DNA of 64,000 bases. Origin: Cyanophora paradoxa CCMP329. Its lineage: Eukaryota > Plantae > Glaucophyta. The first letter of the stretch is position 1, and the number at the start of each line of letters is the position of its first letter. The stretch covers positions 124,001 through 188,000 of the forward strand of contig QPMI01000521.1 of NCBI GenBank assembly GCA_004431415.1, read 5' to 3'. The position numbers and the translations under genes are program-made. The notes beneath the pieces are model-generated. The model saw only the letters and a list, made by a program, of their open reading frames with translations. It had not been told where the DNA came from and made no database searches. Shown here piece after piece: positions 24,033 through 55,239 of the stretch.

Positions 24033-24573
24033 TTACTGGCTAGTCGGACGGGACGAGGCGCCGGCGCCAGCGGCGAAGCCGGAGCCGGAGCCGGCGGCGG
24101 AGCTGGCGTCGTCGAGGCTGACTGTGACGACGTTGCTCGGCTCGGCGTCGAAGTCGTTGTTGAGGGAGAGGAGGTTCACGGTCGGCCGCGGTTTCGCCGC
24201 GTACGCGTACCGCAGCACCGACTCCGCCGCGTCCGACGCCAGCGGCTGCATCCGCGGCGCGCGGCCCGGCGCCGCCGCCGTCGCCCGGCGGGGGCTCCCC
24301 GGCACGGGCCCCGGCGAGCGCGCCCCCGCGGGCGGGCGGTTCGGCGACGCGACCGCGGCGCGCCGCGGGGAGACCGAGTCTGACGCGCCGGCGGCGGCGC
24401 GGGCGCCCGGCGCTGCGGGGCGCCTCGCCGGGCCGGCGCCGGGCCGCGCAAGCCGCCGCGGGGGGCGGGGAGGGCCCGTCGAGGGGCATGTTGGCGTGGT
24501 TGAGCCCGATCGAGGCCCGCCGGCGCGGCGGCGAGGCCGACGCGACGGCCAGGCGGCCGGATGCGTCGGCCCT

Positions 24574-24605
<32 letters not shown>

Positions 24606-27600
24606 GCGGCGCGGGGGCACGCTGGCGCTGGCCGCCGACGAGGCGTACGACCCGACGCTGCTGTCGCCGATGAGGTGCACGGCGACGACGGGCGCGCGGT
24701 CGCGGTTCGCCGAGCGGCCGCGCTCGATCCGCACGCTCACGTCGCGCTCGTCCACGACCTCGACCTCGGCCGCGGCGCCGGCGCCGGCGCCGCCCTCGAA
24801 GACGACCTCCCTGAAGCGGAAGGCCCTCGCCTCCCACTCGTCCCACCGCTCCGAGCGCGCCAGCATCGCCTCCACGTCCTCCACCGCCCTCTGCTTGCCG
24901 CCGGCCAGCGCCGCCGTGCAGCGCACCACGACGCGCTTGACGTACGGCGGGCAGCGCCGGGCGGCGCCCAGGAGGGCGTCCACGCAGGCTTGCTCGACGC
25001 TGAGCGCCTCGGCCGTCCACGTCGCCCGCAGCACGGGCGTCCACGGCCCGGGCTTCGAGGCCTCCGGCTCCGCCGCGGCCGGCGCCCCGTCCTGCCCATC
25101 CTTCTCCTTCTCCTTCTTCTTCTCCTCGCGCTCGACGACCTCGGCAAAGGCGACGCAGTCGAGGGTGCCGGGGACCTTGGCGGACGGGCGGGGCGTGCAC
25201 TCCAGCGAGACGTGGAGGCGGTGCTCGCAGCGCCGCCAGCGCGCCGCCGTCGCCCGCGGGCCGATCTCGTAGAAGTCCAGGTCCGAGAGGTCGCTCGCCA
25301 GGCTGCACTCGTCCGTCGCGCTCGACCCGTCCTCCTCGCCGTCGTCCTCCCCATCCTTGCCGTCGAGCTTCCCGGCCTTGCGCAGCCTGCGCCGGCGGCG
25401 CATGTCCCGCAGCTTGCCCTTGAGCGCCTTGCCCTTGTCCTTGGCCTTGACCGCCGCGCTCCCGATCTTGTCGATCTTCGTGAGAAGGCCCTGGAGAGCG
25501 CATACAAACATCAGATCGCGGGGAGAGGGCGACGCGGGCGGGCGCGCACGATGATGGTCTCGATCATCTTGATGGCCTGCTCGAGGAGGAGGATGCCCAT
25601 GCCCATCATGGCGACCGCGAAGAAGTACGTCGCCGAGTCGAACTGGACGCCCAGCTCGAGCATCCAGACGCCGAGCAGCAGGAGGAACTCGGTCATCGTC
25701 GTCACCGTCTCCATGAAGCCGACCTGCCGCGAGATGTGCGGCCGCCCGAACGCCAGCAGCCTGCGCCGCCCGCCCGCGTCAGACAGACCAGACCGGCGCC
25801 GACAACGAACTCGAATTTGAAGGGCGCACGAGAGGAGGACGGCGTTGATGACCATCATGATGGTGACCTGGATGAGGGGTCCCTTGTCGCCCATCGCGCT
25901 CGACTGCCCCTGCGCCTCCAGCGCCGCCGTGACGCTCTCGCCCGCGTCCGCGCCGTCCTGCTGGATGCGCTTGGGGGCGAGGGCGCCCAGCAGGACGTCG
26001 GCGACCAGGATGCGGAAGAGCTTCAGCATCGCGAAGAGGAAGAGGAACATGTGGGAGCGGTAGTCTGGAGAAGAAATAAGATAAAGACACATATATAAAG
26101 GCCAGCTAGCTATATAAAGACAGATAGATGAAAGGCACCTTCGTAGAGGGCGCCGTAGCCCTCCGAGAAGACGACGGCGCGCTGGCCGTGCTTCTCCTCC
26201 TGCACCCGCCACTCGCCCCGCAGGAGCGCCTTCTCGAGCTGCGCGCCGGGCCGGCCGCGGGCGGCGCGTCAACTTCGGGCGAGGAACGTGCGCGGAATCA
26301 AACTATACTAAAAACTACACTTAGGAACGGCCGCACGAGGAGGAAATATACTAAAAACTACACTTAGGATGCTTAGCAACTGAGGAATCGAAGTGAACTA
26401 AGAACTGCGCTCAAAACGGGCGCACGAGGAACATGAACTTGCGGTAGTAGTAGTGGACGCCCTTGAAGAAGATGAAGATCGACTCGAAGCGGCGCCTGCG
26501 TGCGGGGCGGCGGGCGCGTCGTGGTCAGCGCCGGACGATGGGAAACTGCGACGAGAAACTGCGGCGAGAAAGGCGCACATCTTCTTGCCCTTGGCCTTGT
26601 GGCCCCACTTCTCCTTGCGCTTCCTCTGCGGCGCGCCGGCTCAGAAGACATACGTGCGGGCAATCGCGGCCGCGGCCGCGGAGGGGCACGCACGTTCTTC
26701 TGGATGACGCGCTTCATCCCATCGTACATCTGCGCGCGCGAAGAGTTCAGCGCTGCTCGGCGCAGCAGCCTGGATCGGGCGCTGCCCGGCCCGGCTCGGG
26801 CGAACCTGGCGGAAGAAGCCGGGGGCCTCCTCGAACTCGAGGAGGCGGTCGCGGCGGATGCGGAAGAAGAGGATCATCGAGAAGAGGGCGATGACCGAGA
26901 ACATCACGAACTGCGCGATAACGTCACGTGATATATAACGTGGTATCAGTGACGTTTGTTCGGTCAGTTTGTTCGGGCGCACGAGGATGATGAGGGCGAC
27001 GGAGCGCCAGCCGTTCTCGGGGGAGAGGATCATGCGGGAGCAGGCCGTGCAGATCGCCGTGAAGAGCCCCAGGAAGAGCGCGATCTCCGGGAAGGGCCAC
27101 GCCAGCTTGCCTGCGCGAGGGTTCGAATGCAGAAGAAGAGCGAAGGAGGAGAAGGGAGGCGGGCGGGGGGGCGGGCGGCACCGGCGAGGCGCTTCATCTT
27201 CTTGAGCTTGACGACGAGGAGCCAGTGCGCCACGTAGTGCGCGATGAGCAGGCCGCAGAAGAGCACCGCTGCGCGGCCCGGATCAGATCAGGTCAGATGC
27301 TCGGAGGCGGCAGATCAGATCAGATGAGCGCACTGCCGTAGAAGAGGGGCGAGAAGAAGAGGTCCTTCTTGTCGAAGTCGGCGGCGGGCGAGGCCTGCGG
27401 CGCCGGCGTGACGCCGGGCGCCGGGTTCGGGTCGTCGATGATGATCTCGAGGAGGCGACGCCGCCTGCGCCGGCCGGGCCGGGGGCCGTCAGGGGCAGCA
27501 ACGCAAAGGCGGCCACGCCGAATGTGGCCGTTGCTCAGACGGCCGTTGTTCATTTCAAGGGCAAGCGCACCGGTCCTCGGTGATCTCCTCTACGACTGCG

Positions 27601-30600
27601 GTCTTGCCAGTCGCCGTCGCCCGCCTGCGCACACGTGCGGGGCCGCATGTGAATACCGTGCGCGAGCCCGGCCGGAGACTTCACGCAGCGCGGCGCACGT
27701 CTGCGGGCCGGGCGGCGTGGCGTTGAAGCCGGGCCCGGGGAAGAGCAGCATGAACATCGCGAAGCCGTCGGTGAGGACGCGGAAGCTCGCCGGGACCTTC
27801 GTCGACGCCAGCGCGCCCTTCGCGACCGCGAAAGAAAAGCATCAGGTGGGGCGGCTCGCGAATGGGGGGCGGGCGAATGCGGCTTCGCGCGGACCACGAT
27901 GCAGAGGGCCTGGGCGTGGTTGAGGAGGGCGAGGGAGCTCGAGTTGTTGGAGCACTCGCGCGGCGGGTTCTTCTTCTTCTCCTCCTCCTCCTTCTGCTTC
28001 TTCTCCTCCTCCTCCTTCTTGCGCCGCTCGTCCTCGTTCTGCTCCTCCTGCTCCTCCTCCTTCTTGTTCTGGTTCGCGGATGTCACGGTCTGCGGTCCGT
28101 TCGGTCCGCCGCCGCCGCCGCCGCCCGCGCCGCCGCCGCCCGCGCCGCCGCCGCCCGCGCCGCCGCCGCCCGCGCCGCCGCCGCCCGCGCCGCCGCCGCC
28201 CGCGCCGCCGCCGCCCGCGCCGCCGCCGCCCGCGCCGCCGCCGCCCGCGCCGCCGCCGCCCGCGCCGCCGCCGCCTGCACCGCCGCCGCCCGCTCCGCCG
28301 CCGCCTGCACCGCCGGCACCGCTGGCGCCGCCGGCGCCGCCGGCGCCACCCGCGCCTCCCGCGCCGCCGGCGCCGCCCGCGCCTCCCGCTGCACCACCGG
28401 CACCGCCTGCTCCGCCCGCTGCGCCGCCTGCGCCGCCAGCACCACCCGCTGCGCCGCCTGCGCCGCCAGCACCACCCGCTGCACCACCCGCACCGCCCGC
28501 GCCGCCCGCAGCGCCGCCGGCACCGCCCGCTGCGCCTCCGGCACCGCCCGCTGCGCCTCCGCACCGCCCGCTGCGCCCCTGCCGCTCCTCCAGCGCCTCC
28601 CGCAGCGCCACCCGCGCCGCCAGCGGCCCCGGCGCCTCCAGCTGCGCCGCCGGCCCCCCTGCGGCGCCTCCAGCCGCGCCCGCGCCTCCTGCGGCGCCGC
28701 CTGCACCGCCGGCTGCGCCCGCGGCGCCACCGGCGGCGCCGCCCGCGCCTCCAGCGGCGCCCGCCGCCCCGCCTGCGCCGCCAGCCGCCCCCGCGGCGCC
28801 GCCGGCCGCCCCGGCAGCACCGCCAGCGGCGCCAGCAGCGCCAGCAGCTCCCGCTGCTCCAGCGCCGCCAGCTGCGCCTGCAGCTGCGCCTGCGGCACCG
28901 CCAGCCGCCCCTGCAGCACCCGCGGCCGCGCCAGCCGCTGCGCCTCCTGCACCGGCAGCTGCCCCAGCAGCTGCACCTGCCGCGCCCGCAGCAGCTGCAG
29001 CCCCCGCTGCTCCACCGGCAGCGCCGGCAGCACCGGCCACGGCTCCGCCAACCGTGCCGGCAACACCCGCTGCAACAGCAGCAGCTGTCCCGCCGGCAAC
29101 GTACTGGGCAGCGGTCATCGTCGGCTCCTCCTGCTTGTCTTGCGTGTTGTCAGCCGAGCCTGAGCCCGCGGTGGCGCTTGTGGCGGCTTCGGTGCTGCTG
29201 GCTGTGCCGGTTGTTCCAGCTGTTCCCGCCGTGGCGCTGGTGGCGCCGGCCGCCCCACCCGAAGCCGTGGCTCCAGCCGCTCCGGCCGTGGCTCCAGCCG
29301 CTCCGGCCGTGGCTCCGGCGGCTCCGGCCGTGGCTCCGGCCGCGCCTGCAGCCGTAGCAGCCGACGCGGCGACACCGGAGGCGACAGAGCTCGAGACGCC
29401 GGCAGCTATGCTCTTGAGGACGCCCGTCACAATGGAGTGCGCGATCGCGGCGACGATCAGTGCCGAGACGACTTGCGCCGCCTGCTGCGCCATCTCTGGC
29501 GACACGGACTCCTGCAATACTGCAGGCGGCAGCGCGTCAGCGCAGAGCAGACGAGCGAGATGCAGACGCTGCGCACGTATGGTCTTTTTGCGGCGGTAGA
29601 GGGGATCGCCAACGGCGACGGTGGTCGTCGCGTTGGCAGTGCCGCCACGGTCGTCAGTGACGGTGAGGTTGAAGAGCCACTCGCCCCCGCCGACCAGCGT
29701 CATCAAAGCCCAAGTCGCCGTCGTGTTCCTCCCCTGCCTGAACCTGACCGTGCTCGGCCCCGACATCTGCCGCCAGACCGCCGATGCGATGTACCCATCC
29801 GAATCGGCGAAGAAGGCGACCGTCGTGAGGAACCGCGTCTCGTTCAGGGCTGTCGTGTTCGTCGCGTTCACTGCGATGATGTACATCTCCGCCAGGCCCG
29901 AGATCGTGGGCGGCACGTTGGGAAGCGGCGTCGGCGCCAGCTCCGTCGACGACGTGTTCTGCCTGACGATGACGGGGTCCAGCAGGATGGCGACGGACGA
30001 GACGTTGGAGAGGCCTCCGGAGTCATCCGACACGATCAAAGAGAAGACGCAGACGCCCTTGGCCAGGACGGGGAACGAGCAGATGCCGAACTGCTGCGTC
30101 GTGTTCAGCTGTGCAGTCGTCAGCGGGCAGCGCCCCAAGGCGAGATCGGCCGTGTTCGTCGAACTGTCCACGCGCCAACGGAACCCGATGACAAACTGCG
30201 GCAGAAAGATCAGCGCTTCGAATCGAGCGCAACCGACCGCGCGAGCCGCACCCCGTCCTCGTCGGTGGAGTCGAGGCCGTCGAGGGAGCTGACGGGCCCA
30301 CGGATGGCGAGCCGGCCGTCGACGGCGAAGTAGAACGGCGGGCGGACCGCCAGCCTGGACTTGGGCATGACGTTGCCGTCGCGGGGCAGCACCGTCTTGT
30401 TGAGGACCTCGACGGCGGACCCCGGGAAGAAGGAGACGAGGACGTCCGGCTGGAACCCGTCCATGAGGGTCTTCAGGCCGTCGGCCTCGGCGATGCTGGA
30501 CGAGGAGACGTTGACGCGGAGGACGACGGACCCCCGGAACGCCAGGATGGAGCCGATGCGGAAGGACTCGACGCCGATCGAGTTGGCGACCGACTGCGTG

Positions 30601-33600
30601 AGCGACCGGCGGAAGATGACGTCCTGCGCCGATGTGTGGGCAGCAAGCTCGAGAAGAGTCGAGCGAGACGACGGGTGAAACGGCGGACCTGGTAGTTGTC
30701 GAGGAAATCGTCGTAGTCGGCCGTGATGCGGATGTCAGTTAGAAGGACTGCGGGCGACGACATCAGAGCCAAGATTTCGCACAAGGGAGCAGTCGAAAGA
30801 AAGAATATTGTTACCCGGGCTGTAGAAGACGTCCATGGTGACGCAGCTCTCGCTGGACTCCTGGGCGATGGGGTCCTCGACGTAGACGCAGAATCCGTAC
30901 ACGCCGTTGCGGACCAGCGACGACGTGACCACGGTGTCGTTCTTGCTGAGCGCGAGGGTCCGGGGCCGGCCCTCCGTCTGGTTCCACGCGATGACCACCT
31001 TGTCCTTGGCGAGGTCGCGGCCCGTGATATTCACGATGAGCTCCAGCGGGTCGATGGGCAGCAGCATGCGGATGCGCGTGCCGTCGAATACGGCGACGTC
31101 GGTGTACTCTTCCCGGGCCGTCGCGGCCGGGATGAGCAGGTACGTGCGGATCGGCGGCATGTAGCGGTACGAGTTGTCGACCGAGGCGAGGATCGAGCCG
31201 GGGCCCGGGTCCGGGTCGCCGACGACGCCGCGGCTCCAGAGGACGATGGCGCAGGCCTCGCCCAGGCCCTCGGCGCGCGGCGTCAGGAACCGAACCTGCG
31301 TTGCGTTCCTGAACAGGATCTTCGGCGTCGATATGTCGCAGACGGTGACGTCGATGGTGATGTTGTTCGGCGGGAACTTCTCGCCGAAGAGCGTGACGAC
31401 CTGCCCGCCGACACGGGGGCCGAGGTACGGGAAGATGGAGTAGAAGATCGACTCCGTGGCGCGCACTTCGATGGAGAAGACGGCCGGCGTGAAGGCCGTG
31501 CACCCGGCCGCCGGCTCGTAAACGGAAGGCGCCAGGGGCACGCTCACGCGCGCGGCTGCAGCGGGCCAGATCGCCGTCACGTTGAAGGAGAAGGCGGTGG
31601 AGTTGGCGCGCGTCAAGTTCGAGATGCTCAGAGGCGGCAGAACGTGTGTTGAGACGAGCGCAGGCGCGAGGAAGTCCGTCTTGGTCAGCAGCGCCGACTG
31701 GGGGCTCGCGAGCGCCCAGCAGGCCATGGAGGCCCCCCCGTAGAGGACTTTGGAGGCGCACACGATCTCGTTGCCTGCGGCGGGGTCAAACCGAGCAGGC
31801 ATGGCGGGGCGGGAGGAGCGCGAACCTACGAGCACAGCGGGCACGGGGTCCGACGGCAGGATCGTGAGAGGGGAGGCGAGAATGTCGGAGTAGGGAATGG
31901 ACAGGAGGACAGGGTCGGGAGAGAGCGCGGTCGGCGTCCACTCAAAGCCCAGGACAGAGTCATAGCCCTCAAACGGTGCGCTGGTGCGGAGGGCCGAGAA
32001 GGTGCCTAGGCTGGCCGGCGCTGTCAATGGCGCGGCAAAGTCCGTCAGCTGAAGCGGGACGGAGCCATTCGGTGCGCCGACGAAGCACTGGACCGGGGAG
32101 CACAAGGACCGCCGCGTGATATTGCACCAGAAGTCCGCCACGACGAACGTGACTGCGAAAGGAGAGCCGGACACGATCCAAGTCGCCCCGCCCGTGTCGA
32201 GAGACGAGCTGTAATTGACGTTGATGGTGACGGCGACGGCCGCTGTCGCCTGGAGGACGAACTGGACACCGCGCGTCGTCGGATCGGCGGAGAGCGTCGC
32301 GACGGTGCCCTCGAGAGTTGGGACCATCCACGGGGACACGAAGTCTTCGACCAGCAGTGAGGGCCCGCTGGCATCCGGAACAATCTGGCAGATCTGGGGT
32401 GCCCCGAGCGCCCGCCGAGGGCTGCAGGACAGCGCTCCTGAAACAACCGATACGGGGCTCTGCAGCAACTCGCCTCCGCCCACCGCGTCCGACCACGGTA
32501 TAGCGAGAGTGTCAGAGAAGGCCGAGACTCCGGCCGTGAAGGATGACTCGAAGCCCGAAAGCTGATCCAGGGCGCCGATTGGAAGCCATCCAGAGAAAGC
32601 CTGCAGAGCCCCTAAAGGCGAGGCGGCGGCAACAGGAACCCCTAGATCGCCCTCGGCCAGAGACGCTCCACCGCTCACGGCATAAACCGAGCACTTTAAC
32701 CGGGATCCCAATGTCAGCCGGGTCGTGCAGTTGCCCGTCGCATTCACGATCACGATCGTCTGCACGGGGCCAACTACCGCCACACTCGGATCCGTGTTGA
32801 TCGCGTCGGCCCACTGCACAGAGATAGGCGCCCCGTTGTCTGTTGTCACGGCTGTTGCCACGAAGCTGAAGGTCAGGTGGCCCCCGGCCAGTGCCTGGAA
32901 CGCCGTGTATGTGCCGTGAGCCGACGCCACCGACACAACATCAGACACCCGAAGGTCGTCACTCGTCTCGCTCTTCCGCACTTCGCAAGTGGCGTTCGCC
33001 CCGACGCGCCTCCGCAGGCCCGTGCAGTTCACGGACGCCGCCACAACTGTCACACTCACCGGCGATGCTGCTACGTGCTGCATCGTCCCGTCCAGCGCAG
33101 ACGAGTACCGCACCGACAGCTCCGACACCGCATCAGCGCTTTCTTGCGTGATGTTGAAGTAAAGAGACCCCGCCCGGGATACTATTGCAGAGATCATCCA
33201 AGAACCAGCAGGCGCCATTGAAACGGTCACGTCCCCCACCAGCAGTGCTGGCGACGCCCCCACTGGGTCCACCCGGCACTCCACCCAGCCGTTCACCACC
33301 ATCCGGATGCGCGGGCAGGACAGCGCCGCCGACACGACTGTCACCGCCGCTGAGCCACCGAGCTGGCCGCCGCCAATTGTCGTGTTGTACGCCGCGGTTG
33401 CTGAAACGTTTAATCCTCCAAACGGCGCCGACACCACGAAGACCACATTGTCCCCCGTGCTGCCCGAGACGTTGACGGCGGATGCGGCCGCGAACGACGC
33501 CGAGCTCAACGCCGAGGAGAGCGACAGGCTTGCGACGTCGGTGGTGGCCAGCAGAGCAGAACCCGCCTCCCGCACCGCGACCAGGTTGAAGGAGGCGTTC

Positions 33601-36600
33601 ACCGCGACTCGGGAGAAGCTCGCCGGGACGGTCAGGTTCGCCGCTATGAATGTCAAGGTCGTCGGAGACCCGGGCACGAGCCGCGCGCTTCCGTCAACGT
33701 CCACGCTTGCCGAGTAGTTCACGTAAAGCCCGATCTGTGCCGGCAGGGATGTCTGCAGCGTGAATCCCACGCCATTGGACGTCGCGTTCAGAGCGAGGGC
33801 TGTGATGGTCCCCGGGAATGCAGGCAGCGTCCACGGCGACACGAAGTCTGCCACCTGCAGCGCAGGCGACGTGCTGAACGGAAGCACCCGGCACCCGATC
33901 GGCGCGTTGATCGCACGCCTCATCCACAGGTCGCACGTCAGATTGCTCCCGATGACGATGAACGATCCCGCTGAGAGCCGGCCACCGCCAACCGCCGCCG
34001 ACCACCAGATCTCCATGCTGGCCGACGGCACTGTTGCTGCCGCCACAAAGCTGAGGGCCACGTCTCGCGCGTACACAGCACTCGATGAAGCCGCCACTTC
34101 GCTGCTCGTGGAAGCGTTGTACCGCAGCCATCCAGAAGAGGAGACAAGCGCGTTCACCGACGCCCCGACTGCTACAGGCACCGCAAAATCGCTCGGCTCC
34201 AGCGACGCGCCGCTGCTCGGTGTCACTGCAGTGCATACCAGTCGCGATCCCAGCGCCAGCCAGGTCGTGCAGTTGCCCGTCGCATTCACGATCACGATCG
34301 TCTGCACGGGGCCGACCACCGCCACGCTCACGTTTGCGTTGATTGCATCAGCCCACTGCAAAGAGATTGGCGCCCCGCTGTCTGTCGTCACGGCTGTTGC
34401 CACGAAGCTGAAGGTCAGGTGGCCCCCGGCCAGTGCCTGGAACGCCGTGTATGTGCCGTAAGCCGACGCCACCGACACAACATCCGTCGTTCGGAGATCG
34501 GCGCTCGTCACGCTCTTCCGCACGTCGCAAGTGGCGTTCGCCCCGACGCGCCTCCGCAGGCCCGTGCAGTTCACGGACGCCGCCACAACTGTCACGTTCA
34601 ATGGCGACGACGCCACGTGCCGCGTCGTCCGGTCCAGCGCAGACGAGTACCGCACCGAGAGCTCCGACAGCGCCACCGCGCTCTGAGGCGTGATGTTGAA
34701 GAACAGCACCCCCGCCCGCAGTACCACCGTCGACACCGTCCACGCGTCCGCTGGCGACACCGACACGGTCACGTCCCCGACCAGCAGTGCTGGCGACGCC
34801 CCCACGGGGTCCACCCGGCACTCCACCCAGCCGTTCACCACCATCCGGATGCGCGGGCAGGACAGCGCCGCCGACACGACTGTCACCGCCGCTGAGCCAC
34901 CGAGCTGGCCGCCGCCAATTGTCGTGTTGTACGCCGCGGTTGCTGAAACGTTTAATCCTCCAAACGGCGCCGACACCACGAAGACCACATTGTCCCCCGT
35001 GCTGCCCGAGACGTTGACGGCGGATGCGGCCGCGAACGACGCCGAGCTCGACGCCGAGGAGAGCGACAGGCTTGCGACGTCGGTGGTGGCCAGCAGAGCA
35101 GAACCCGCCTCCCGCACCGCGACCAGGTTGAAGGAGGCGTTCACCGCGACTCGGGAGAAGCTCGCCGGGACGGTCAGGTTCGCCGCTATGAATGTCAAGG
35201 TCGTCGGAGACCCGGGCACGAGCCGCGCGCTTCCGTCAACGTCCACGCTTGCCGAGTAGTTCACGTAAAGCCCGATCTGTGCCGGCAGGGATGTCTGCAG
35301 CGTGAATCCCACGCCATTGGACGTCGCGTTCAGAGCGAGGGCTGTGATGGTCCCCGGGAATGCAGGCAGCGTCCACGGCGACACGAAGTCTGCCACCTGC
35401 AGCGCAGGCGACGTGCTGAACGGAAGCACCCGGCACCCGATCGGCGCGTTGATCGCACGCCTCATCCACAGGTCGCACGTCAGATTGCTCCCGATGACGA
35501 TGAACGATCCCGCTGAGAGCCGGCCACCGCCAACCGCCGCCGACCACCAGATCTCCATGCTGGCCGACGGCACTGTTGCTGCCGCCACAAAGCTGAGGGC
35601 CACGTCTCGCGCGTACACAGCACTCGATGAAGCCGCCACTCCGCTGCTCGTGGAAGCGTTGTACCGCAGCCATCCAGAAGAGGAGACAAGCGCGTTCACC
35701 GACGCCCCAACTGCTACAGGCACCGCAAAATCGCCCGGCTCCAGCGACGCGCCGCTGCTCGGTGTCACTGCAGTGCATACCAGTTGCGATCCCAGCGCCA
35801 GCCGGGTCGTGCAGTTGCCCGTCGCATTCACGATCACGATCGTCTGCACGGGGCCGACCAGCCTCACGCTCGCGTTTGCGTTGATTGCATCAGCCCACTG
35901 CAAAGAGATAGGCGCCCCGTTGTCTGTCGTCACGGCTGTTGCCACGAAGCTGAACGTCAGGTGGCCCCCGGCCAGTGCCTGGAACGCCGTGTATGTGCCG
36001 TGAGCCGACGCCACCGACACAACATCCGTCGTTCGGAGATCGGCGCTCGTCACGCTCTTCCGCACGTCGCAAGTGGCGTTCGCCCCGACGCGCCTCCGCA
36101 GGCCCGTGCAGTTCACGGACGCCGCCACAACTGTCACGTTCAATGGCGACGACGCCACGTGCCGCGTCGTCCGGTCCAGCACAGACGAGTACCGCACCGA
36201 GAGCTCCGACAGCGCCACCGCGCTCTGAGGCGTGATGTTGAAGAACAGCACCCCCGCCCGCAGTACCACCGTCGACACCGTCCACGCGTCCGCCGGCGAC
36301 ACCGACACGGTCACGTCCCCCACCAGCAGTGCTGGCGACGCCCCCACGGGGTCCACCCGGCACTCCACCCAGCCGTTCACCACCGTCCGGTTGCGCGGGC
36401 AGGACAGCGCCGCCGACACGACTGTCACCGCCACTGATCCGCCGAGCTGGCCGCCGCCGATTGTCGCGTTGTACGCCGCGGTTGCTGAAACATTAGTCCC
36501 CACAAACGGCGCCGTCACCACGAAGACCACGTTGTCCCCCGTGCTGCCCGAGACGTTGACGGCGGATGCGGCCGCGAACGACGCCGAGCTCGACGCCGAG

Positions 36601-45600: not shown

Positions 45601-48600
45601 TATAGCATTCAATCTGCGAAAATGATCCGCAAGAGGCTCAAAGATAAGAAAGAAAGACCGCGCTCTCTATCTCAGCACACCGTTTTGTTCGTGAACAGTT
45701 CCTTCAAACTCCAGTCTTGAGGGAAGTAAGATGGGGGAACGAAAAAGGAGCCGTTGACCATCGCTGACACAGCGGCAACAGCTGTTGAACCCCCGAGAGT
45801 GACAACCAGTGGGTCGAAGTAAGAAGCTTTGAAATCCGAGAAGGTATTGTATCGCGAGGGGATGACATAGATGGCGGTAGAAGATCCGACGGGCAGGCGA
45901 AGGAAGAACTGGCTCGGGCTCGCGACAACGAGCTGCACCGTCTTGAAGGGGAACTGCGCGACCACCACGCCATCCGAGCGCGCGTTCCACTGCGCCTGGG
46001 CCAGCGAAGCGCCCTGATTCGAACGGACCCAGTACAAGATGGAATCCTACGGTAGGAAAAAGTAGATAAGCACTCGATGAATATCGAAAGATAGAGCGAA
46101 GAAGCACGAACTCCTCCTGGGTATCCGCACGGGTACCGACACTCAATGTTGATCGGGATGCAATTCGGGGAACAGCTTGAGCTGCCGCTCCGATCTCAGA
46201 AATGACAAGTTAATAATGCTTTCGAAAAACATGTGCACTGACTTCGTCGATGTGTCGAGATCGAGCCCGCCGGATATGGGATAGCTCGCGGTTGCCTTGA
46301 GAATTGTGCATTCGGCGAAGAACGGGTAGCCCACGCTCACGCCGAGAACAGCTGGCGAGCAAACAGTGCCGGGCAAGATTTCCACGATTTCGATGTAATT
46401 GAAAATAGTATTCCTTGGGTCAATTCCCGTGAAGTTGAAGGAAAGATCTATTTTGGCCTGAAACTCGCTCGTGGCGTTGTGGTTGTACCTGTGTGTGCGC
46501 GCGTCACGAACCCGTCGCTTTCTGCCTGAGAGGGAAAAGCGCACGTGAAGTTGTACGAAGTGTAGCAGCCAGAGCCGCCCTCGGTCGAGTTGCAGAAAAC
46601 GAACTGCAGCGCGGCGTGCACTCGTCATGCCAACCCCTGCTCTAGAAGGCAGATCTAGAGCATACCGATTTGTCCGTCGACGATGAGAAGCCGACGTCAG
46701 CGCTGTTCGGACCCCAGTTCGTGATGTACCCGGGGCCGAACGCGATCCTGGGGGGCACGATGGCCGACATGGGCAGGACGGGGCTCGAGGGCCCTTCCTG
46801 CACCCGGAAATTGCACTCGGTTTTGCCGCCCGCTGCGCGCGAAAAGAGTCAGGGTCGAACCCGGAGCCGCGATCCTACTCGCAGACATCGGATTCGATTC
46901 TTGGTGCACTGCAAATTGTAGAACACGATTGCTCTGACGCTGGAGTTCCTGCGGCAAAGCAGTTTAAGTATTCTAGAAAGATGCGCGCGGCTCGCGATCA
47001 AAAGCCCTTGCTCTCACCAGACCGTGCGGGACGGCTCGGGAATTCCGCTGAAGTCGGGGAGACCCGCTTTCACATAGACGCGATCGACGGAGGCTCCGTA
47101 GGGCGCCTGCACGAGATGTTCACAGACAGATCTAGACCGCGATGCTGTATGTATGATCATAACAGACTGCGGGCGCACCAGACGGAAGAACACGTTCGGT
47201 GCGTTGTCCAGAAAGTCCACGCTCACCTTCCCGTCATCCTGCGGGAAGCCCTCATTTAAAGCAACTGGCGAACGCGGCAAGGGATTTGCGAACAGATCGG
47301 AAGACAAAGTCCTTGCGACTCAGTGAGGCTGATCCGTTCCCGGGAACTAATCGAAACGTCGTCAAGAGCAGATTGAAAGCTATGAAAATAATCGAAAAAG
47401 GGGAGCATACGAATGGTGCACTGCTCCAGTGTCTGCAGCGTTACGACAGGTCATGCTACGTGCGTGCGAGCATAGGAAAGCGATCTAGCGCACCGGGAAG
47501 CCGCCGAGAAGTATGGTCGTGTTGGGAATGCAGGACTGGTCCGCAATTATAGCGGCATCAATGATGCTGCAAATAGACTGCGCTTCAAGAGACGCAGGAA
47601 GACCGGTACGCACACAAATGGAAGAACAAAATGAAACGCACCGGTATTCGACTTTCGTTACGGTGCTGATGCCGGTGGGCGACACGGACGAGCTCCAGGG
47701 AATCCCGAAGACAAACTTCGACTGGGGCGACAGCGGGAATGGCTGGATCGTAAACTGGACATGCCGACAGTTGAGTGACGTGAGGGGTTCTCGCTAGAGC
47801 GGCGGGCGCACCTCGACGCCATTGGAGACATTCCTGGCACTGGTTGGGTCCAGCCCCGCGGGCCAGGACGCATCGCGGGTCTGCGTGGTTGCGCTTGAAC
47901 GAAAACACGAAGCACAATCGGTTTTTGCGCACCCAGTTGAAATCCGTCACGCTTGGAATTGCCGAGGACTGAATGTTGCATTGTTCACAGCCCTACAGCG
48001 TACAATGAACATCAGGATTTCGCAAGGCCACGAAAGCAGGCGATACGTGTAAGCCTCGCACTTGTTTTGTGTACGGATGCCCAAAATCTTCCGGTTCAAT
48101 CAAGCAAGTCCTGTTGTATGGTGCGTTCAGCCACTGGTTCCAGTTCACTCGAGCACCCTCGGTGTCAAGGCCTTGGTTGAATGTCGGCCTGCAGGAGAAT
48201 TGCGCGAAAAGCCGCCACGGCTCCCACTTCGCCGCGTTGTCCGGCGAACGCGCTGCAAGCCCACGAATGGATCAATAAACGCGCATTGGATGCAAGGGGC
48301 AGTGGGGTTTCAATACGCACATTTGAGGACACTCACGGTTGTTGAAATGTAGGGCTTGAGCAACGCCCCGGCAGTCGAGAGGTAGGCTGTCGCCCACCGC
48401 ACGTACAACGTCGTTTCCGCTACAACGGAGGGGGACCCGAACGTGATGGAGACGTTGGCACTCCTGGACGCTGAAGAGAACGCAAACGTGGGCCGCGGGC
48501 TGGCACCAGCCCCGACGTCTGTTCTGCACGCCGCGAGATCTCCGGGGCAGTTTCCGTCGTTGTTTGCGCCCGTCGGCGCGTACTGCGAACGAGTGTTGAG

Positions 48601-51600
48601 CGTCGCGTGTCCCTTCAGAGCGGAGAGCGCACCTGAAGAGTCGAGAAGAACCCGGTCTGAAAGTGCGCCGTGCTGAGGGAGGCCCCGCCCACGGACTCGA
48701 TCCAGCAGTTGATCGTGTCCCGCGCCACCACCCGGTAGCGCTCGCACTTGACGGCGGCCGTGATCACATTCAGCGCGAAGGGTGAACTTGCGATCGCGTA
48801 GCCAGACGGGTGGTACGTCACGTTCACGCGCTGGCTGCCTCCGGACAGGCCGTTCGCCCGCACCGAGAACTGGATCTGTGGCTAATGTGAGTGACGTCGC
48901 GTGAAAAGCGCTCATTCAGCTAGACCCGGCCCGCAGAGCCAGGCGCACATTTGGAGAGCCGGACATTGCTTCGTAGACCTCGAGCCCGCCATCCGGAAAA
49001 GATATTGCAAAGTCGCTCGTTTGGATGGGCGCCCCGTTAGCTCGGGCTGTGACCGTGCATGTCGTCGCGTCTCCCGAGAGAAGGGCGGCGTTGGCAGTCG
49101 GATATGAACACCAGAGCGTGCCCCCTGTAAAGTCAAAGCGTGAATGTGTGCGGGAACGAGATCTATGCCATGACCACTTATAAAATTACCGATTATCTGG
49201 CTCGTGGTCCCTGTGTTGAGAAGCGATTTGCTGTCGGTCGACGTGCCAGCGACTTGAGAGGTGATCTCGGCAGACATCGAGTAGGAAGAAACTGTGATGC
49301 TGTCGACTGCCTTGACGTCGATCTTCAGCGTGCCGTCGGCAGCCGAGCGAGGAGAGCCGACGGTGAGACCTGTCGTGGCGGGAACGGACACCAAAACATC
49401 CGTCGGGACAGGGCTAGGAGAGCCTGTTTGGACGGCGTAGATCGAGCAGGCAACAGGGACGTTGATCGGGGTTCGGGATGGGCAGTCGATTTGCAAAACT
49501 GTTTCTGCATGTGAGGATTCGAGCTCGAGCAGGAATCATGGGAAGACACGCACGTCCTAGCACGTCGAAAGGAAGAGGCGACCCGCTAACACCGACACCG
49601 CCCAGGCGAATGACGATCGGCCGGTTGAAGAGGGGATCGGGGCCGGTGGTGACCTTGAACTGAAGTACGCCATTCGCATCGAGAGAAAAGAAACCCGTGT
49701 CGATTGAGAAAGCCCGCGCCTCCCCCAAGCCGGTTGTGTAGTTTTCAAAGACGCTTAGATCCGCCAGCAGAAAGCTTGCCGAGCCCGCGACCTTGGTGAC
49801 TGCACGCAGCCGCAGGAGACCGCAAGAGTTAAGGGGGCATTATAGTTAGGTTGTGTGCGGCGCACCGTTGCAGAAATAACTCGACGACGTTCGCGTCCGG
49901 CATCTCGACTGGCCGGACACGACTTGCTGGCAGTCGCACGCGAGCACGCCTGCAACCTGCGGCGCTTCGTCATTCGCTAGCTTACGCTGCGAGAAAGGAC
50001 ACTTCAAGAGGGGCTCACGACTGGGATCGACGTGTTCGCAAGCTTGAGTGCTGTCATCGTCGCGTAGATCTCCACGCCGGCGTCGCCGCCTCCGACGGCG
50101 GGCGTCCAAGTGAAGGCGATGGCGCCGCCGTCGATGTCTGTCACCCCAGTTACGGTTCCCGCTGCTGCTTGGATGGTGACTTCGGTGGTCGAGAGAGCAT
50201 TGCCCCCGACCGCTCTTTGAAGCGTGCAGGAGAGATGAACGCCAGGGTACGCCCGCTTTGCGGAGCACACGATGTCGCCGGCGCCAGTCGCGCCCAGAGA
50301 GAACGACGGGGACGGGGAGCTCTTGTAGGGAGCGATGACCTGGATCTGTCCAGCTCGCGATGGCGTCACCGTGAACCGCATCGACGAGCCAACAGCGGTG
50401 AACGCCGAGAATCGGACGCCCGGCACGGCCAGCGCCGTGTCGAGATCGGCGAGGGTGATGCTCGGCGTCGAGTTTGTCGGCGTCAGAGTGCACGTCGTGC
50501 TCGTGGGCGTCGCCGGGCTGTACGCGACTTGCGCCGGCGTGCAGTTGAAGGACGACGCGATAATCGTGAAGGTAAGCGCGCCTATCGCATCGCCGCCGGC
50601 AGCCGCGGAGAAGGCGACGGACACGTTCTCGGTCTGGTACGTGGACCCGTTCAGCGCGTAAACAATGAACGAAGCCTGCGAAGTGCAGGGCATTAGTGAG
50701 CCGAGTCGACGCGGAAAACATTGCCGCGAAAGCGGAATGCACCGTCTGGCCAGCGGCGTCGACCGTAATTGGCGAGACCGAAAGGGATGTGTCTGCTCTC
50801 ACAGGTGCGACGACGAACGCGTCTGGACTGCGTAGCGGCCCCGAGCGCGCCGTCCTGGTGAGCGTGCACCCGATGCCGCCTCCCGAGTGGATCCGGGAGT
50901 AAGAGCACGAAGCCGTCACCTCTGCGGGGCAATCGCAAAGTCAAGGGAAGTGCGCAGCTCAAAAGGGCGAGGGTACGAGTACGCGCCGACAAACGATCCC
51001 TCGACGGACGCGGCAGGAACCAAAGAGCCGTCGACGAAGCTGACGCGGGAGAGCGAGAACGGCACCGTAATTGTAAAAGCGGTCTCGGTCCGATTCGTCA
51101 CGTTCGCTGAGAATGTGAACGACGTCTGACCGGAGACAGCCGCCAGAGGCGTGAGCGAGAGCGCCGTCGACGGTGTCACGCGAGGCGCGAGAAGATGCGA
51201 GAGAGACACAGCCTCCATGACGTCCACCATAGCGAGCGTGCAGACGGCGGTCGGGAGGAGGGTCTGCCGAGCGTCATGGAACGAGTTTAGATCTTAGGAA
51301 GCGAATCGGACGCGAGAAACTCACAATGTTGATGTTGAGGGAGAACGTCGTGGTCGTGCACGTGAGCGAGATGACGGGAATCTGGATGCTCTTCGAGAAC
51401 GGGGCGGCGGCCGGCAGCTGCAGCGCCTCGCCCCTCGAGGAGCTCCAGAAGAAGTCCACTCGGCTCCGCGACACGTAGGCGCAGGTGACGTTGCGCGAGT
51501 ACTTGGCTCCAGACAGTGCGGGCGCAGTCGCCGTGAAGTTGCCGGCGGTCGCGTTCAGCTTGAAGTCGTCTTCCATCGCTGTCGCTGAGACGCCGAACCT

Positions 51601-54600
51601 GTCCGTCTGAAGCACAACCGTGCAAGACAACGTCTGCAGCGGCGCGGTATGAGCGCATGCGGAAGATCGGAGCGTGTTTATGGCAGGCTGCAACGCACGA
51701 CGAAGGTGCGCCCGACCGAAAGGAAGAGCGCGCAGCCCGAGGCGGTGCTGTTCACGTCGACCACGACAATGTTCTGCGAGGCGGCGACTGGGGTTTGGCC
51801 ACCCCACGAAGCCGCGAAGTTGACTGTGATAGCGAAGCCTGCCGAATCAGCCTACACGGTCGCGCCGCGTCAGGAAATGCGAGAGCATAATCATTCAGGG
51901 GGCGGCGGCGTGGATGCACGCACCATGGTCGTGTCCACGGCCAACGTGAGTAGCGTCGCTGTCCCCGTCGCCGTGAGGTCCCGGAAGGTCGTCTCTCTCG
52001 CTACGCTCAGGGCGAAGTCCGACGGGGAGACCGCCACCGGGCTCGTCGAGTTGCAGTGCGCTCGGTAGCCCCTCGCCACGCGGGAAGTGCACGAAAGAAC
52101 CACCGATATCACGTCGACGTCGAAGCCGGGGAGGGCGATCCGGAGCTCTCCCGTCCCCGCGGTGGTGGAAGCCCACTGCGGCCCGACAGTGAATCTCCCT
52201 CCCATGGTTCCGGTGAAGTACGTGCGGAACGACCCCGCGGTTCCAGCTCCGGATACGGCTGCAAAAAAGCCCCCGGGAGTGCCGGAGGACCTGTGCAAGC
52301 GTCAGAGCGGAGGGCACTGAAATGAAACAAATGAAAGCGCTGACGGAGGAAAGTCTGAGGCCAGCAGTACGGGTACGTTGGACCCTGTCGGCGTGTCGAT
52401 GCGGCAGCTCGTGATCTGTAAAACGATATTCTCGCGCGAGAACGAAAACGGCTGAAAGACAGCGTTCACGCACCGTCCCCGTGTTAATTGGAGTGCGAGC
52501 GCCAGTGCAGGAAACGGTGCCATCGATCACAATGAAGCTGCAATTGCCCGCCCAGACTTGAAGCCGAGGGTCCGACCGTGCGCTCAGGCGAACCTGGAGC
52601 AGCGCCTGACTAGAAAAGAGCGTCTGTGGTGCCGTCTCGCGAAAAGCAGCGGAAACGCATACAGGAACAATACTGCGAACCGCCGTGTTGGACACGACGA
52701 TCGAAAGTTGACCGAAGCTTGGCTGCACGCTGACGACGAGCCCGCTGTCCGGAGAGTCAAGCGTCACTGCCAATTACGTCGACGTCGCGAGTCAGTGCCA
52801 GGGCATTATTAGAGGGGCATATCAGAAGAAACTATCTGAAGCACCAGTTATGTCGTTAGTATCAAGCGGCGCGCTGCCCCAGGAGCTGAACAGCTCCAGC
52901 CTCGCTGGCCTCCCCCGCGCCACGCGCATCGCGGAGCTCGGGCTCGAGCCCCTGCCGTCCGGGAGGCACGCAGGGTCGAACGCCTTCAGGACGAACTCGC
53001 CGCTGAATATCATCGCGACCTCGAAGTCGACGACAAGCTTGTAGGGGCCGACCTGCATGAAAAGCGCGTCAGTCGCTCTTAATCAAACTATGAGAGTCGA
53101 CTAGAGCTGCAGCGCACCCCAAACTGGGGGCTGATCGTCAGGGAGTAGGTCGTGGTCGCCCCGCCATGGGTCCAGACTCTCTGCCCCGCGATCGAGTTGG
53201 CCACGATCGGGACGGCCTTCCACAGGGCGCGGTCCGCCGTGTACGCCTCAGTGGGGCCGAACGACGGGGCGAGCCACAGCCAGAAGTACGGCGCGGTCGC
53301 GTTGACCGTCAGCCTGCCGGGCCCTCATGATCAGCAGAGGCGGCGGGCCGGGGCGTGCTCGAGCGCGGGCGAGGCGGCGGGGCGGCGCGGCGCGGCGCGG
53401 CGCACTGGTAGGAGACGCGGGTAGCGATGACGGTCGAGGACACGCCGATGTTCACCGCGCCGACCGCGAGCGCGTACGTGTTGACCGTGTAGAGCGACGT
53501 GTTCCGCCCGTTGCCGGAGATGATGTCGATCACGACCTCGTGCCTGTGCGGCGAGACGGCGTCGGGGGGCGGCCGGTCAGGATCGGACAAGGCACGCGGC
53601 CACGCATGCATATGGGAGGCGCACGTCGTGAGGCCCGTCACGTCGTACAGGCCGTCCCTGTGCCCGCGCGCGGTCAGTGCCGCGGCGCTTCAGTTGTGCG
53701 GAGGAATGACGCGTCGCGATTGCGCGCAGGGCCGCGCGGTGCGTGCGCACCCGATGCGGAAAATCTCCCCGGTGCCGTACGTGTAGTTGCCCGTCGAGCC
53801 GCGCACGCGGTGCTTGCCCCGCCACTGCAGCCCGGGGGCCGTGCTCGAGACCCGCAGGAAGACCGGAGAGGGAGTCGCCTCGGCGGGGTTCCGGTAGATG
53901 TAGAGGCTGTAGGGGCCCGCGTCCTCCGGAAGGAAATCCTTCGTCGCCGTGAGGCGCGTCGGGCGGAACAGCGGCAGCGCCGTCGACCCGACCGCGGCCA
54001 GGGCCGAAAGCCGCGTCTCCGAGCCGCCGGCTGCCGGCGCGGGCCCCGCGATTCAGTACACTCCAGCGGGCTCCTACGCGGGCAGGGAAGGGGAGGAGGG
54101 GGGAACGGGGGGAACGGGGGACGGGAGGGGGTGTGCGAAGGATGGGGAGGGGGACGCACGGTGGAAGTACAGGGGGATGCGGAGCTCGGACCCGTCGACG
54201 TACACCCTCCGTGGGAGGCCATCGGTGGGGTCCACGGACCTGGCGAAGGCGAAGGGGGTGCGTGAGAGGGCCGGCGAACGCGACGATCAAAGCCGCGACG
54301 GCCGCGGGAGCGCGCGGGAGCGCACAGGAGGCCCAGCGTGCGCGTATTTCCGTAGGTGTAGTTCATCGCCGGCGTCTGGCCGACGCGGAAAGTGTACCGG
54401 TAGAACGAGAGGCCCTGGGCACGAGCGCCGCACGCGGGCCCGAGGTCAGGGGGAGCCCGAGGGAGGGGGGTCAGCAACGAGGCCCCGGCCCCGCCCGGCC
54501 CCGCCCCGCCCCGCCCGGTCAGCGCACGGGGAAAAGCGGGTCGCTCGTGACGAGGGCGGGGGTCGCGAGGAAGTCGTCGATCTGGCCCGTGGTGAGGCGG

Positions 54601-55239
54601 GCGTCGCGGCTGTAGCTCCCGTCCCACAGCACGTAGGCCAGCCGCAGGAGGCCGCAGCCGCCGTTCGTGGGCGCGACGAGGCACAAATAATTCAGCGTGC
54701 AAGTAATCTCGTCCCCTGCCGCGGCGTGTCAGCGGCAGCAGCGCGGTAGGGCGTCCTGCACCGGAGCTGACCGAGGTATATCGGGTCACTTAGAACCAGC
54801 CCGCGGTCTGCGCATGCGCCGCGGCATCACGAGTGCATCGCGCGGAAAATCGAAGAGAGAGCGGCGGGCGCGGGCTGCCGCACCGCAAGTCACGCCGAGC
54901 GTGTCCGGCGTGATGACGGCACCCAGCTCGGGCAGCCCGCTCAGAGTCAGCAAATCTGCGCGGGACGCGCAGAGCGTGCTTAGCTGAGATCGTCTGCGGC
55001 AGGCCCCCGACTCACCGAGGCCAGTGGCGGGCTGCGCTGCGACCGGGGTCACACTGAACAGGCAGCTGCAGGCCACCAGCACAAGGAGCGGGAAAGCCGC
55101 GGCCAGCCCCCCGATCTCGAGCGCTGGGCCGCGCTTCCTCGGGCCTGCATCGGGCGGCGTTCGTAGCTAAGCCGTGGCCAGCAGGCAAGGCGGGGAGGGG
55201 GGGCGCTCTCGCGCGAGAGGCACCTGCGGCATTCTTCAT
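24033..55239 (-). CDS. Giant cell-surface multi-pass protein: signal peptide, cadherin-like beta-sandwiches, dozens of ~100-aa Cys-pair Ig/filamin-like modules, IPT/TIG, PKD x3, SEA-like, Gly/Ala tract, TRP(Flc/Pkd2)-like TM domain, cytosolic tail
   Basis: N-terminus MKNAA|GPRKRGPALEIGGLAAAFPLLVLVACSCLFSVTPVAAQ. A continuous run of minus-strand exons carries the same module from ~52.8 kb to 31.5 kb, with no intergenic-like gap. TM region has LLNHAQALCIV|GAL...VPASF, GEW...YGALYE|DYR and RPHISR. Not every junction was checked. Confidence 0.7.
25550..27950 (-). other. Multi-pass membrane domain of the giant protein, TRP_C (fungal Flc/Pkd2)-like
   Basis: Hydrophobic segments AVLFCGLLIAHYVAHWLLVV, FPEIALFLGLFTAICTAC, FVMFSVIALFSMILFF, MFLFLFAMLKLFRILVADVLLG, LIQVTIMMVINAVLL, TEFLLLLGVWML, YFFAVAMMGMGILLL, plus a YGxLYxDY motif. 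Confidence 0.6.
28105..29400 (-). repeat. Coding low-complexity Gly/Ala tract: (GGGGA)n, (GGAAGGA)n, (AGATAGA)n
   Basis: 15-bp unit CCGCCGCCGCCCGCG repeated at ~28110-28300, then synonymously varied G/A codons, in frame in ORF 27550..30171. Confidence 0.9.
29625..29925 (-). other. PKD (KIAA0319-type) domain of the giant protein
   Basis: NVPPTI...DSDGYIASAVWRQMSGP...GEWLFNLTVTDDRGGTANATTTVAV. Related copies lie at ~29985-30330 and ~30820-31150. Confidence 0.8.
31155..31455 (-). other. IPT/TIG domain of the giant protein
   Basis: SIFPYLGPRVGGQVVTLFGEKF...VTV...NATQVRFLTP...YRY matches the IPT pattern PxxGPxxGGxxVTLxGxxF. Confidence 0.85.
32700..39770 (-). repeat. 1,542-bp (514-aa) near-identical coding tandem repeat, about 4.6 copies plus a diverged remainder
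   Basis: Equivalent shadow ORFs recur at 34690/36232/37774/39316 and at 33760/35302/36844/38386, a period of 1542. Confidence 0.98.

Follow-up and report, generated by a model that had tools for sequence, protein, structure and literature searches.

We analysed a stretch of 64,000 nucleotides (nt) from contig QPMI01000521.1 of the Cyanophora paradoxa CCMP329 assembly GCA_004431415.1 (positions 124,001 to 188,000; this whole stretch is the window referred to below, and all coordinates are counted within it). The DNA of the window is nuclear in character, being GC-rich (55-78%) and interrupted by short GT..AG introns. Its minus strand, read from 55239 down to 24033, holds a real, spliced and expressed gene, for which a first-pass annotation made from the letters alone had proposed a polycystin- or adhesin-like receptor-channel. 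We find that the locus specifies an adhesin-like receptor of giant size whose multi-pass membrane domain is an orphan, and that this receptor is not a polycystin. The reading that we favour overall, with a probability of roughly 60%, is one expressed nuclear gene encoding a surface glycoprotein of about 8,000 amino acids (aa) with about 65 immunoglobulin (Ig)-like modules. A literature search returned no paper describing this gene.

An array of Ig-like modules and its expression

The bulk of the ectodomain is built of modules of about 95 aa with two cysteines each. A hidden Markov model (HMM) of 96 positions, constructed from five modules of an internal repeat, detected such modules 48 times between 52100 and 31476, all on one strand and with E-values down to 2e-27. 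Divergent modules are distributed over many exons at 48321..52100 (minus strand, as are all features of the gene; E 1e-7 to 3e-13) and again at 39870..45327 (E 1e-9 to 5e-19), where the array includes an open exon of 574 aa (43661-41940) and closes with an exon ending at 39870. An alignment of 23 divergent copies displays two near-invariant cysteines 13 residues apart, followed by an aspartate about 15 residues later. Given this alignment, AlphaFold2 returned a confident beta-sandwich (predicted local distance difference test, pLDDT, 92.1; predicted template modelling score, pTM, 0.81), for which Foldseek found filamin repeats and the bacterial adhesins FdeC, InvD and InvE (TMq 0.65-0.73, E ~3e-3), and for which a shape search of the ESM-Atlas found clusters of Big_1, Invasin_D3 and Filamin (TM-score 0.70-0.75). 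As modelled, the module has an Ig-like E-set fold of the filamin/invasin type, and its sequence family is unclassified; a profile search of the PDB with the module alignment and a word-based search with the 574-aa exon both gave no match. The likeness to filamin and to the invasin/intimin/FdeC group (Big_1, Invasin_D3) is therefore one of fold, extended in the case of the bacterial adhesins by their own long tandem arrays, but there is no membership at the level of sequence, as 0 of the 23 modules match any Pfam family and the Cys-Cys-Asp signature is peculiar to the modules described here.

The array had been described from the letters as long, Ig-like and rich in N-x-S/T sites, and each part of that description is confirmed. 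In 1,802 non-redundant ectodomain residues there are 48 N-x-S/T sequons, compared to 13.1±3.2 in shuffled sequences (maximum 30), while the 1,110 residues presumed to be cytosolic contain three.

About 26 of the modules reside in a single giant exon of 7,980 nt (31826..39805), an open frame that is contained in the public protein model for this locus. Within this exon lie five tandem units of 1542 bp, each encoding 514 aa and five modules, with starts near 39809, 38267, 36725, 35183 and 33641. Copies 1-4 are 95-98% identical at the DNA level, and copy 5 is identical to copy 4 over 400 nt, then mosaic, then divergent; this arrangement is what recent unequal crossing-over, or gene conversion, leaves behind in a coding array. 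Synonymous and non-synonymous differences among the copies are similar in number, and, with about half of the differences being synonymous, the pattern is that of constrained coding sequence.

The 3' 6 kb of the gene are spliced and expressed. Contigs from three sequencing runs (two studies) behave as RNA, and those from a fourth run are unspliced DNA. The RNA contigs skip 29576-29520, 25828-25760 and 25548-25490, which confirms three introns, and carry the exons 27463-27334, 26064-25829, 25759-25549 and 25489-24619, which confirms four exons. The first of these introns (29520..29576), a 57-nt GT..AG intron that preserves the reading frame, is skipped in contigs from all three runs.

The public model of the gene (EukProt tig00020964_g16806.t1, hereafter P0001) is a protein of 4754 aa that covers 39923..24036 only and unites the giant exon and the membrane domain in one chain. 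In the searches, P0001 stood for the downstream part of the gene, and each upstream exon was a query of its own. Our manual reading of the exons between 27.5 and 25.5 kb is identical to this model, and its 5' end is demonstrably wrong. The ATG from which the model starts (39923) falls within a module exon, that of the preceding module, and is in another frame. That module (40158-39874) is followed by a GTGCAC donor at 39869, where a 64-nt intron (39806..39869, GTGCAC..GGCAG) begins that connects the array upstream with the giant exon; its size fits the 51-191 nt range of introns in this gene, and splicing it out recreates the inter-module junction found in every repeat unit. Because the annotated ATG falls within a module exon and the 64-nt intron restores the repeat junction, and because an N-glycosylated ectodomain without a signal peptide would make no sense, we conclude that P0001 is truncated at its 5' end. 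The gene extends into the upstream exons, as far back as 45.3 kb at least. Additionally, P0001 uses introns 29052-28995 and 28280-28090 and consequently reads the linker downstream of the first transmembrane segment in a frame rich in Q, A, R and L. RNA contigs from three runs cross the annotated intron 29052-28995 unspliced, which renders the public linker frame doubtful and makes a Gly/Ala reading in frame 1 the more likely one. The public model is thus apparently short by about 3,200 residues and its linker is probably misframed, which matters to users of this proteome.

At the far 5' end, the claim of a signal peptide at 55239 was borne out, with the refinement that the start is split. Exon 1 (55224..55239) consists of an ATG and 13 further nt (M-K-N-A-A) and ends at a GTGCCT donor; it was read from the sequence and was also picked by the exon-path model described below. 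A 79-nt GT..AG intron (GTGCCT..TGCAG) separates it from exon 2 (55016..55144), which has the highest local coding score and encodes a classical signal peptide, whose basic n-region leads into a hydrophobic core of some 17 aa and which closes with A-A-Q. Between the signal peptide and the first modules, open frames with high GC content at third codon positions (52200..54955, with borders taken from the rough path model only) encode beta-rich exons to which no fold was assigned. These exons had been interpreted as cadherin-like sandwiches, an assignment that we do not retain: they have no match to any Pfam family, cadherin included (E<=1; E<=0.01).

Membrane-proximal ectodomain, membrane domain and tail

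Beyond the array, the ectodomain changes in character. An IPT/TIG domain at 31269..31448 (P0001 residues 2809-2868) matches PF01833 with 26 bits when scanned alone (cut-off 20.9, E 9e-6) and with 19.1 bits in a scan of the whole of P0001. It is followed by a weak PKD-like stretch at 30849..31004 (residues 2957-3008; PF22352 E 0.047, below cut-off) and, closer to the membrane, by two KIAA0319L-type PKD domains at 29611..30195 (PF22352 E 6.7e-14, two stretches), of which the stronger occupies 29808-29611; in the PDB, these match the PKD domains of KIAA0319L weakly. The IPT and PKD domains of the first-pass annotation are accordingly confirmed. Between the weak and the strong PKD stretches, two exons (30252..30748) encode an alpha/beta-looking segment that had been called SEA-like on account of an R-G-S-V-V-L motif. 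The motif is indeed present in P0001, but the segment matches no Pfam family, SEA (PF01390) included, even at E<=10. Two short motifs may be recorded here: a dibasic R-R-K-K (window 29500-29560, P0001 residues 3365-3370) lies about 15 residues before the first transmembrane segment (TM1), and G-S-V-V-L about 300 residues upstream. Either could mark a site of proteolytic ectodomain shedding.

TM1 itself (29398..29478; P0001 residues 3384-3410), which follows the R-R-K-K motif, reaches a Kyte-Doolittle peak of 2.28 and is covered by RNA contigs. It leads into a low-complexity linker (27895..29397) that is open in frame 1 and, so read, comprises a Gly/Ala tract of about 400 aa and then a Lys/Glu-rich patch. 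The Gly/Ala tract is underlain by about 24 tandem copies of a GC-rich 30-nt repeat (28106-28813, 71% match); this repeat breaks both DNA and RNA contig assemblies and attracts cross-mapping contigs of other loci.

The linker is followed by a seven-helix membrane domain encoded by ten short exons (25550..27463; P0001 residues 3887-4269), for which the manual reading and the public model coincide and three exons are present in spliced RNA. The last exon (24036..25490, with a TAA stop at 24035-24033) encodes a presumed cytosolic tail of 485 aa that is basic, acidic and Pro-rich, and in which no signalling domain is recognisable in Pfam. RNA covers the tail in part, at 24033-24347 and 24619-25489. 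Hydropathy and sequence thus agree with the TM1, Gly/Ala tract and charged tail proposed earlier; in place of the approximately eight further hydrophobic segments of that proposal we count seven, giving eight hydrophobic segments in total.

Within the membrane domain (helices a to g), Lys and Arg number 6 in the a-b loop, 27 in the c-d loop, which is basic and 105 aa long, 2 in the e-f loop and 16 in the tail. Hydropathy and charge assign all four of these segments to the cytosol, with a predicted N-out/C-in orientation of the seven-helix core. On the outer side, the one loop of any size (33 aa) connects helices d and e, and the last two helices are linked by only six residues, too few to accommodate a pore loop. 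TRP and polycystin-2 channels, with their S5-pore-S6 layout, are built differently. No internal duplication is visible in the domain.

One detail of the tail bears on its exon structure. In RNA contigs from two runs, 37 letters beyond 24619 remain unmatched, and a GTGCCC donor-like site is found there ahead of a (CCG)n/poly-Pro stretch. A further tail intron, or a strain difference, may lie at 24619-24620; the two acceptors examined for such an intron, 24572 and 24413, would both shift the frame.

Extent of the gene and kinship of the membrane domain

If the 31 kb are one gene, the product has about 7,900-8,000 aa, at the low end of the 8,000-9,000 aa first estimated. The exon chain upstream of 39.87 kb is a model, and the figure comes from a dynamic-programming exon path that always finds some chain of tiny exons; it therefore conveys a rough length and constitutes no evidence of continuity. 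We consider it probable that the whole 31 kb form a single continuous gene, continuity across 48.3-45.33 kb being the part that we infer.

Several observations weigh against this reading of one gene for one receptor. RNA support, sought over the membrane region, is confined to positions below 30032, and within it the Gly/Ala repeat at 28865-27895 is not spanned by any RNA contig. The stretch 48.3-45.33 kb holds no significant match to the module HMM and its coding scores are weak, so that the gene could be split there, and the lowest GC content of the window is found at 48.3-46.9 kb. With respect to the protein, TM1 plus seven helices conflicts in parity with the positive-inside rule and requires either an additional crossing or a TM1 that does not span the membrane. 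Finally, the membrane domain has no detected homologues, and when AlphaFold2 was run on it with no alignment, the resulting model was unusable (pLDDT 49.9).

Much depends on the interval 45328..48320, in which coding scores and weak HMM matches reveal weak module-like fragments only, and which could either mark a gene boundary or hold long introns along with diverged exons. If it is a boundary, the locus would comprise two or more genes: a secreted Ig-array protein (55.2 to about 48.3 kb), and then a membrane-anchored gene starting within 48.3-45.3 kb. We regard this as a doubtful alternative, and one that the evidence does not all oppose. In addition to the low GC and weak coding scores at 48.3-46.9 kb and the lack of a significant module between 48321 and 45327, it is favoured by the sizes of the verified introns, all 51-191 nt, next to which more than 1 kb of non-coding sequence would be unusual, and by the public annotation, in which the upstream exons are not joined to P0001. 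The last point loses most of its force because the 5' end of P0001 is wrong, so that the limits of the model deserve little weight. Moreover, the exon at 45327 does not look like the beginning of a gene, as it opens at a CAG splice acceptor with an in-frame stop just upstream and no in-frame ATG, and the weak module-like pieces within 48.3-45.3 kb sit on the minus strand, the same as the array. A search of this interval for an ATG followed by a hydrophobic open reading frame (ORF) likewise found none, although this is a weak test whose own control missed the known split start at 55239. A single gene continues to be the reading that we prefer. Within the same interval, positions 46000-48000 have the minimum GC content of the window (0.55); repeats are absent there, and neither strand carries a clear coding signal. 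A transposon as the cause of the gap at 48.3-45.3 kb is unsupported, there being no direct or inverted repeats.

With regard to the membrane domain, the first-pass annotation had reported TRP_C/Flc-like motifs, and with them a channel-like character. At the level of HMMs this is not sustained, an outcome that the annotation itself had named as one that would refute it: a scan of the spliced domain (P0001 residues 3820-4290) gave no match at E<=1 to PF06011 (TRP_C), PKD_channel (PF08016), Ion_trans (PF00520), 7tm families or PF11040 (DGF-1_C), and single membrane exons and the first half of the domain (residues 3925-4130) have none to those families at E<=10. No sequence in the PDB matches the domain at E<=10. 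A phmmer search of 1.84 billion representatives, with the last four helices as query (from just after the c-d loop), returned only the protein itself and no paralogue, and word-based searches with the membrane domain also returned only its own protein, both among giant proteins and among proteins of 226-719 aa.

A different kind of signal comes from protein language-model features in the ESM-Atlas. By this measure the domain scores 0.91-0.93 against unnamed protist clusters; recognition values were 1935 and 2003, below the benchmark of 2300, and in that range high similarity scores count as weak evidence. Among the 30 named matches, eight come from a set with PF06011 in 11% of its members, and one represents a DGF-1_C cluster (0.92). 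We treat this likeness to TRP_C and DGF-1_C as weakly suggestive, a lead and not a test.

Taken at face value, it would make the seven-helix domain a very distant member of a group uniting TRP_C/Flc and DGF-1_C-like proteins, ion-conducting or handling flavin or calcium, and gated by the ectodomain. We consider this unlikely. Beyond the language-model features, it can call on the similar general layout of DGF-1 (bioRxiv 10.64898/2026.07.27.741050). It is opposed by the failure of all four family models (PF06011, PF11040, PF08016 and PF00520), by recognition values under the benchmark, by the lack of any relative in the phmmer search with the last four helices, and by the six-residue link between the last two helices, which excludes a classical S5-pore-S6 unit. 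We also count against it, as a channel, that to our knowledge channel activity is unproven for the Flc and DGF-1 proteins themselves. Ion conduction by the domain is possible, and nothing found supports it directly. Of the earlier notion of a long extracellular tether coupled to a channel-like domain, the very long, sequon-rich tether, the multi-pass domain and the tail stand, while the channel-like part found no alignment-based support.

Comparison with known receptors and proposed function

In layout, the protein resembles the class represented by polycystin-1, adhesion G protein-coupled receptors (GPCRs) and DGF-1. Giant receptors that combine a tether with a multi-pass domain, such as polycystin-1 and the adhesion GPCRs, are central to animal mechanosensing and are enigmatic in protists, where DGF-1 is an example. 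Like polycystin-1, the protein has a very large glycosylated ectodomain with PKD-type Ig-like domains, a multi-pass region and a cytosolic tail, and it is likewise a candidate receptor for adhesion or mechanosensing. The differences are more numerous. A scan of the whole of P0001 against Pfam (E<=1) yielded no REJ, GAIN/GPS or PLAT domain and no secretin-type 7tm_2, in line with the earlier remark that GAIN and PLAT are not evident, and PKD_channel is missing too. There are eight hydrophobic segments here as opposed to 11, the last two helices enclose no pore loop, and the PKD domains belong to the KIAA0319L type; most of the ectodomain is made of the unclassified Ig-like module; and where polycystin-1 has its PLAT domain, in the first cytosolic loop, this protein has Gly/Ala and Lys/Glu low complexity. 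Of the features that define polycystin-1, the PKD domains alone are found and all others fail, which agrees with the earlier view that the receptor is built differently. The adhesion GPCRs differ from it in similar ways, as neither GAIN/GPS nor 7tm_2 is matched by P0001.

KIAA0319L (AAVR) and fibrocystin-type receptors share with this protein the combination of PF22352 PKD and IPT/TIG domains in the membrane-proximal ectodomain. Those receptors are single-pass, whereas here a further seven-helix domain is present and the array is an order of magnitude longer. The fungal TRP_C/Flc proteins (PF06011: Flc1-3, Schizosaccharomyces pombe Pkd2, Aspergillus nidulans TrpR) are comparable in that a luminal or extracellular N-terminal domain precedes a multi-pass domain, and a weak language-model likeness connects the membrane domain described here to ciliate clusters that partly carry PF06011; unlike them, this protein has no TRP_C match by HMM, no TRP_N/ML-like domain and a vastly larger ectodomain. 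In Trypanosoma cruzi DGF-1, a signal peptide is followed by a giant ectodomain of tandem repeats, an Ig-like 'hat' close to the membrane and then 7-9 helices (bioRxiv 10.64898/2026.07.27.741050). The general plan is therefore similar to that of DGF-1 and of the bodonin C-terminal region (PF11040), and the membrane-domain features fall near the DGF-1_C cluster, but the DGF-1 ectodomain is composed of beta-helix 'ribs' where Ig modules are found here, PF11040 is not matched, and the lineage is unrelated.

On the reading of a single gene, these parts may work together as follows. The signal peptide would send the N-terminus out of the cell, where about 65 filamin/invasin-type Ig modules, each probably holding one disulfide and densely N-glycosylated, would form a tether of perhaps hundreds of nanometres, as estimated from typical lengths of Ig modules. 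The middle of this tether appears to have been recently expanded by unequal crossing-over of the five-module unit. Near the membrane, the chain would pass through the IPT/TIG and PKD domains, TM1 and a flexible Gly/Ala and Lys/Glu linker to a compact seven-helix domain and a long charged tail. Such a protein could act as an adhesion or surface-coat receptor whose ectodomain binds a substrate, other cells or matrix, with binding or pull being relayed to the multi-pass domain and the tail, which would signal or transport inside the cell. We infer both the location at the cell surface and the activity, be it signalling, transport or that of a channel, from the architecture of the protein.

A purely structural role, as a coat or matrix fibre for which the multi-pass domain is a firm anchor without signalling, would suit the near-identical, recently amplified modules and the heavy glycosylation, both typical of coat and adhesin proteins, and the tail without a recognisable signalling domain, yet it seems quite improbable, since a single helix would suffice as an anchor and since ten precisely spliced exons and a conserved-looking basic loop of 105 aa argue that the seven-helix domain has a function of its own.

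We therefore return to the receptor. If it is what it appears to be, it would represent a third independently built example of the design, found in a glaucophyte, and would indicate that this design recurs across eukaryotes. A membrane domain without known relatives is a target for structural and electrophysiological study. It is conceivable, as a long shot, that the seven-helix domain is a new class of signalling or conducting module, perhaps at the deep root of TRP_C/Flc and DGF-1_C, mounted on a tether of about 65 modules, and that the whole is a glaucophyte sensor of force or contact with an origin independent of polycystins and adhesion GPCRs.

Outside the gene, upstream of its start codon, all three frames of the minus strand hold long, GC-rich and mutually overlapping open frames (up to 468 aa) at 56900-58760; read on that strand, they could be another gene or chance ORFs driven by GC content.

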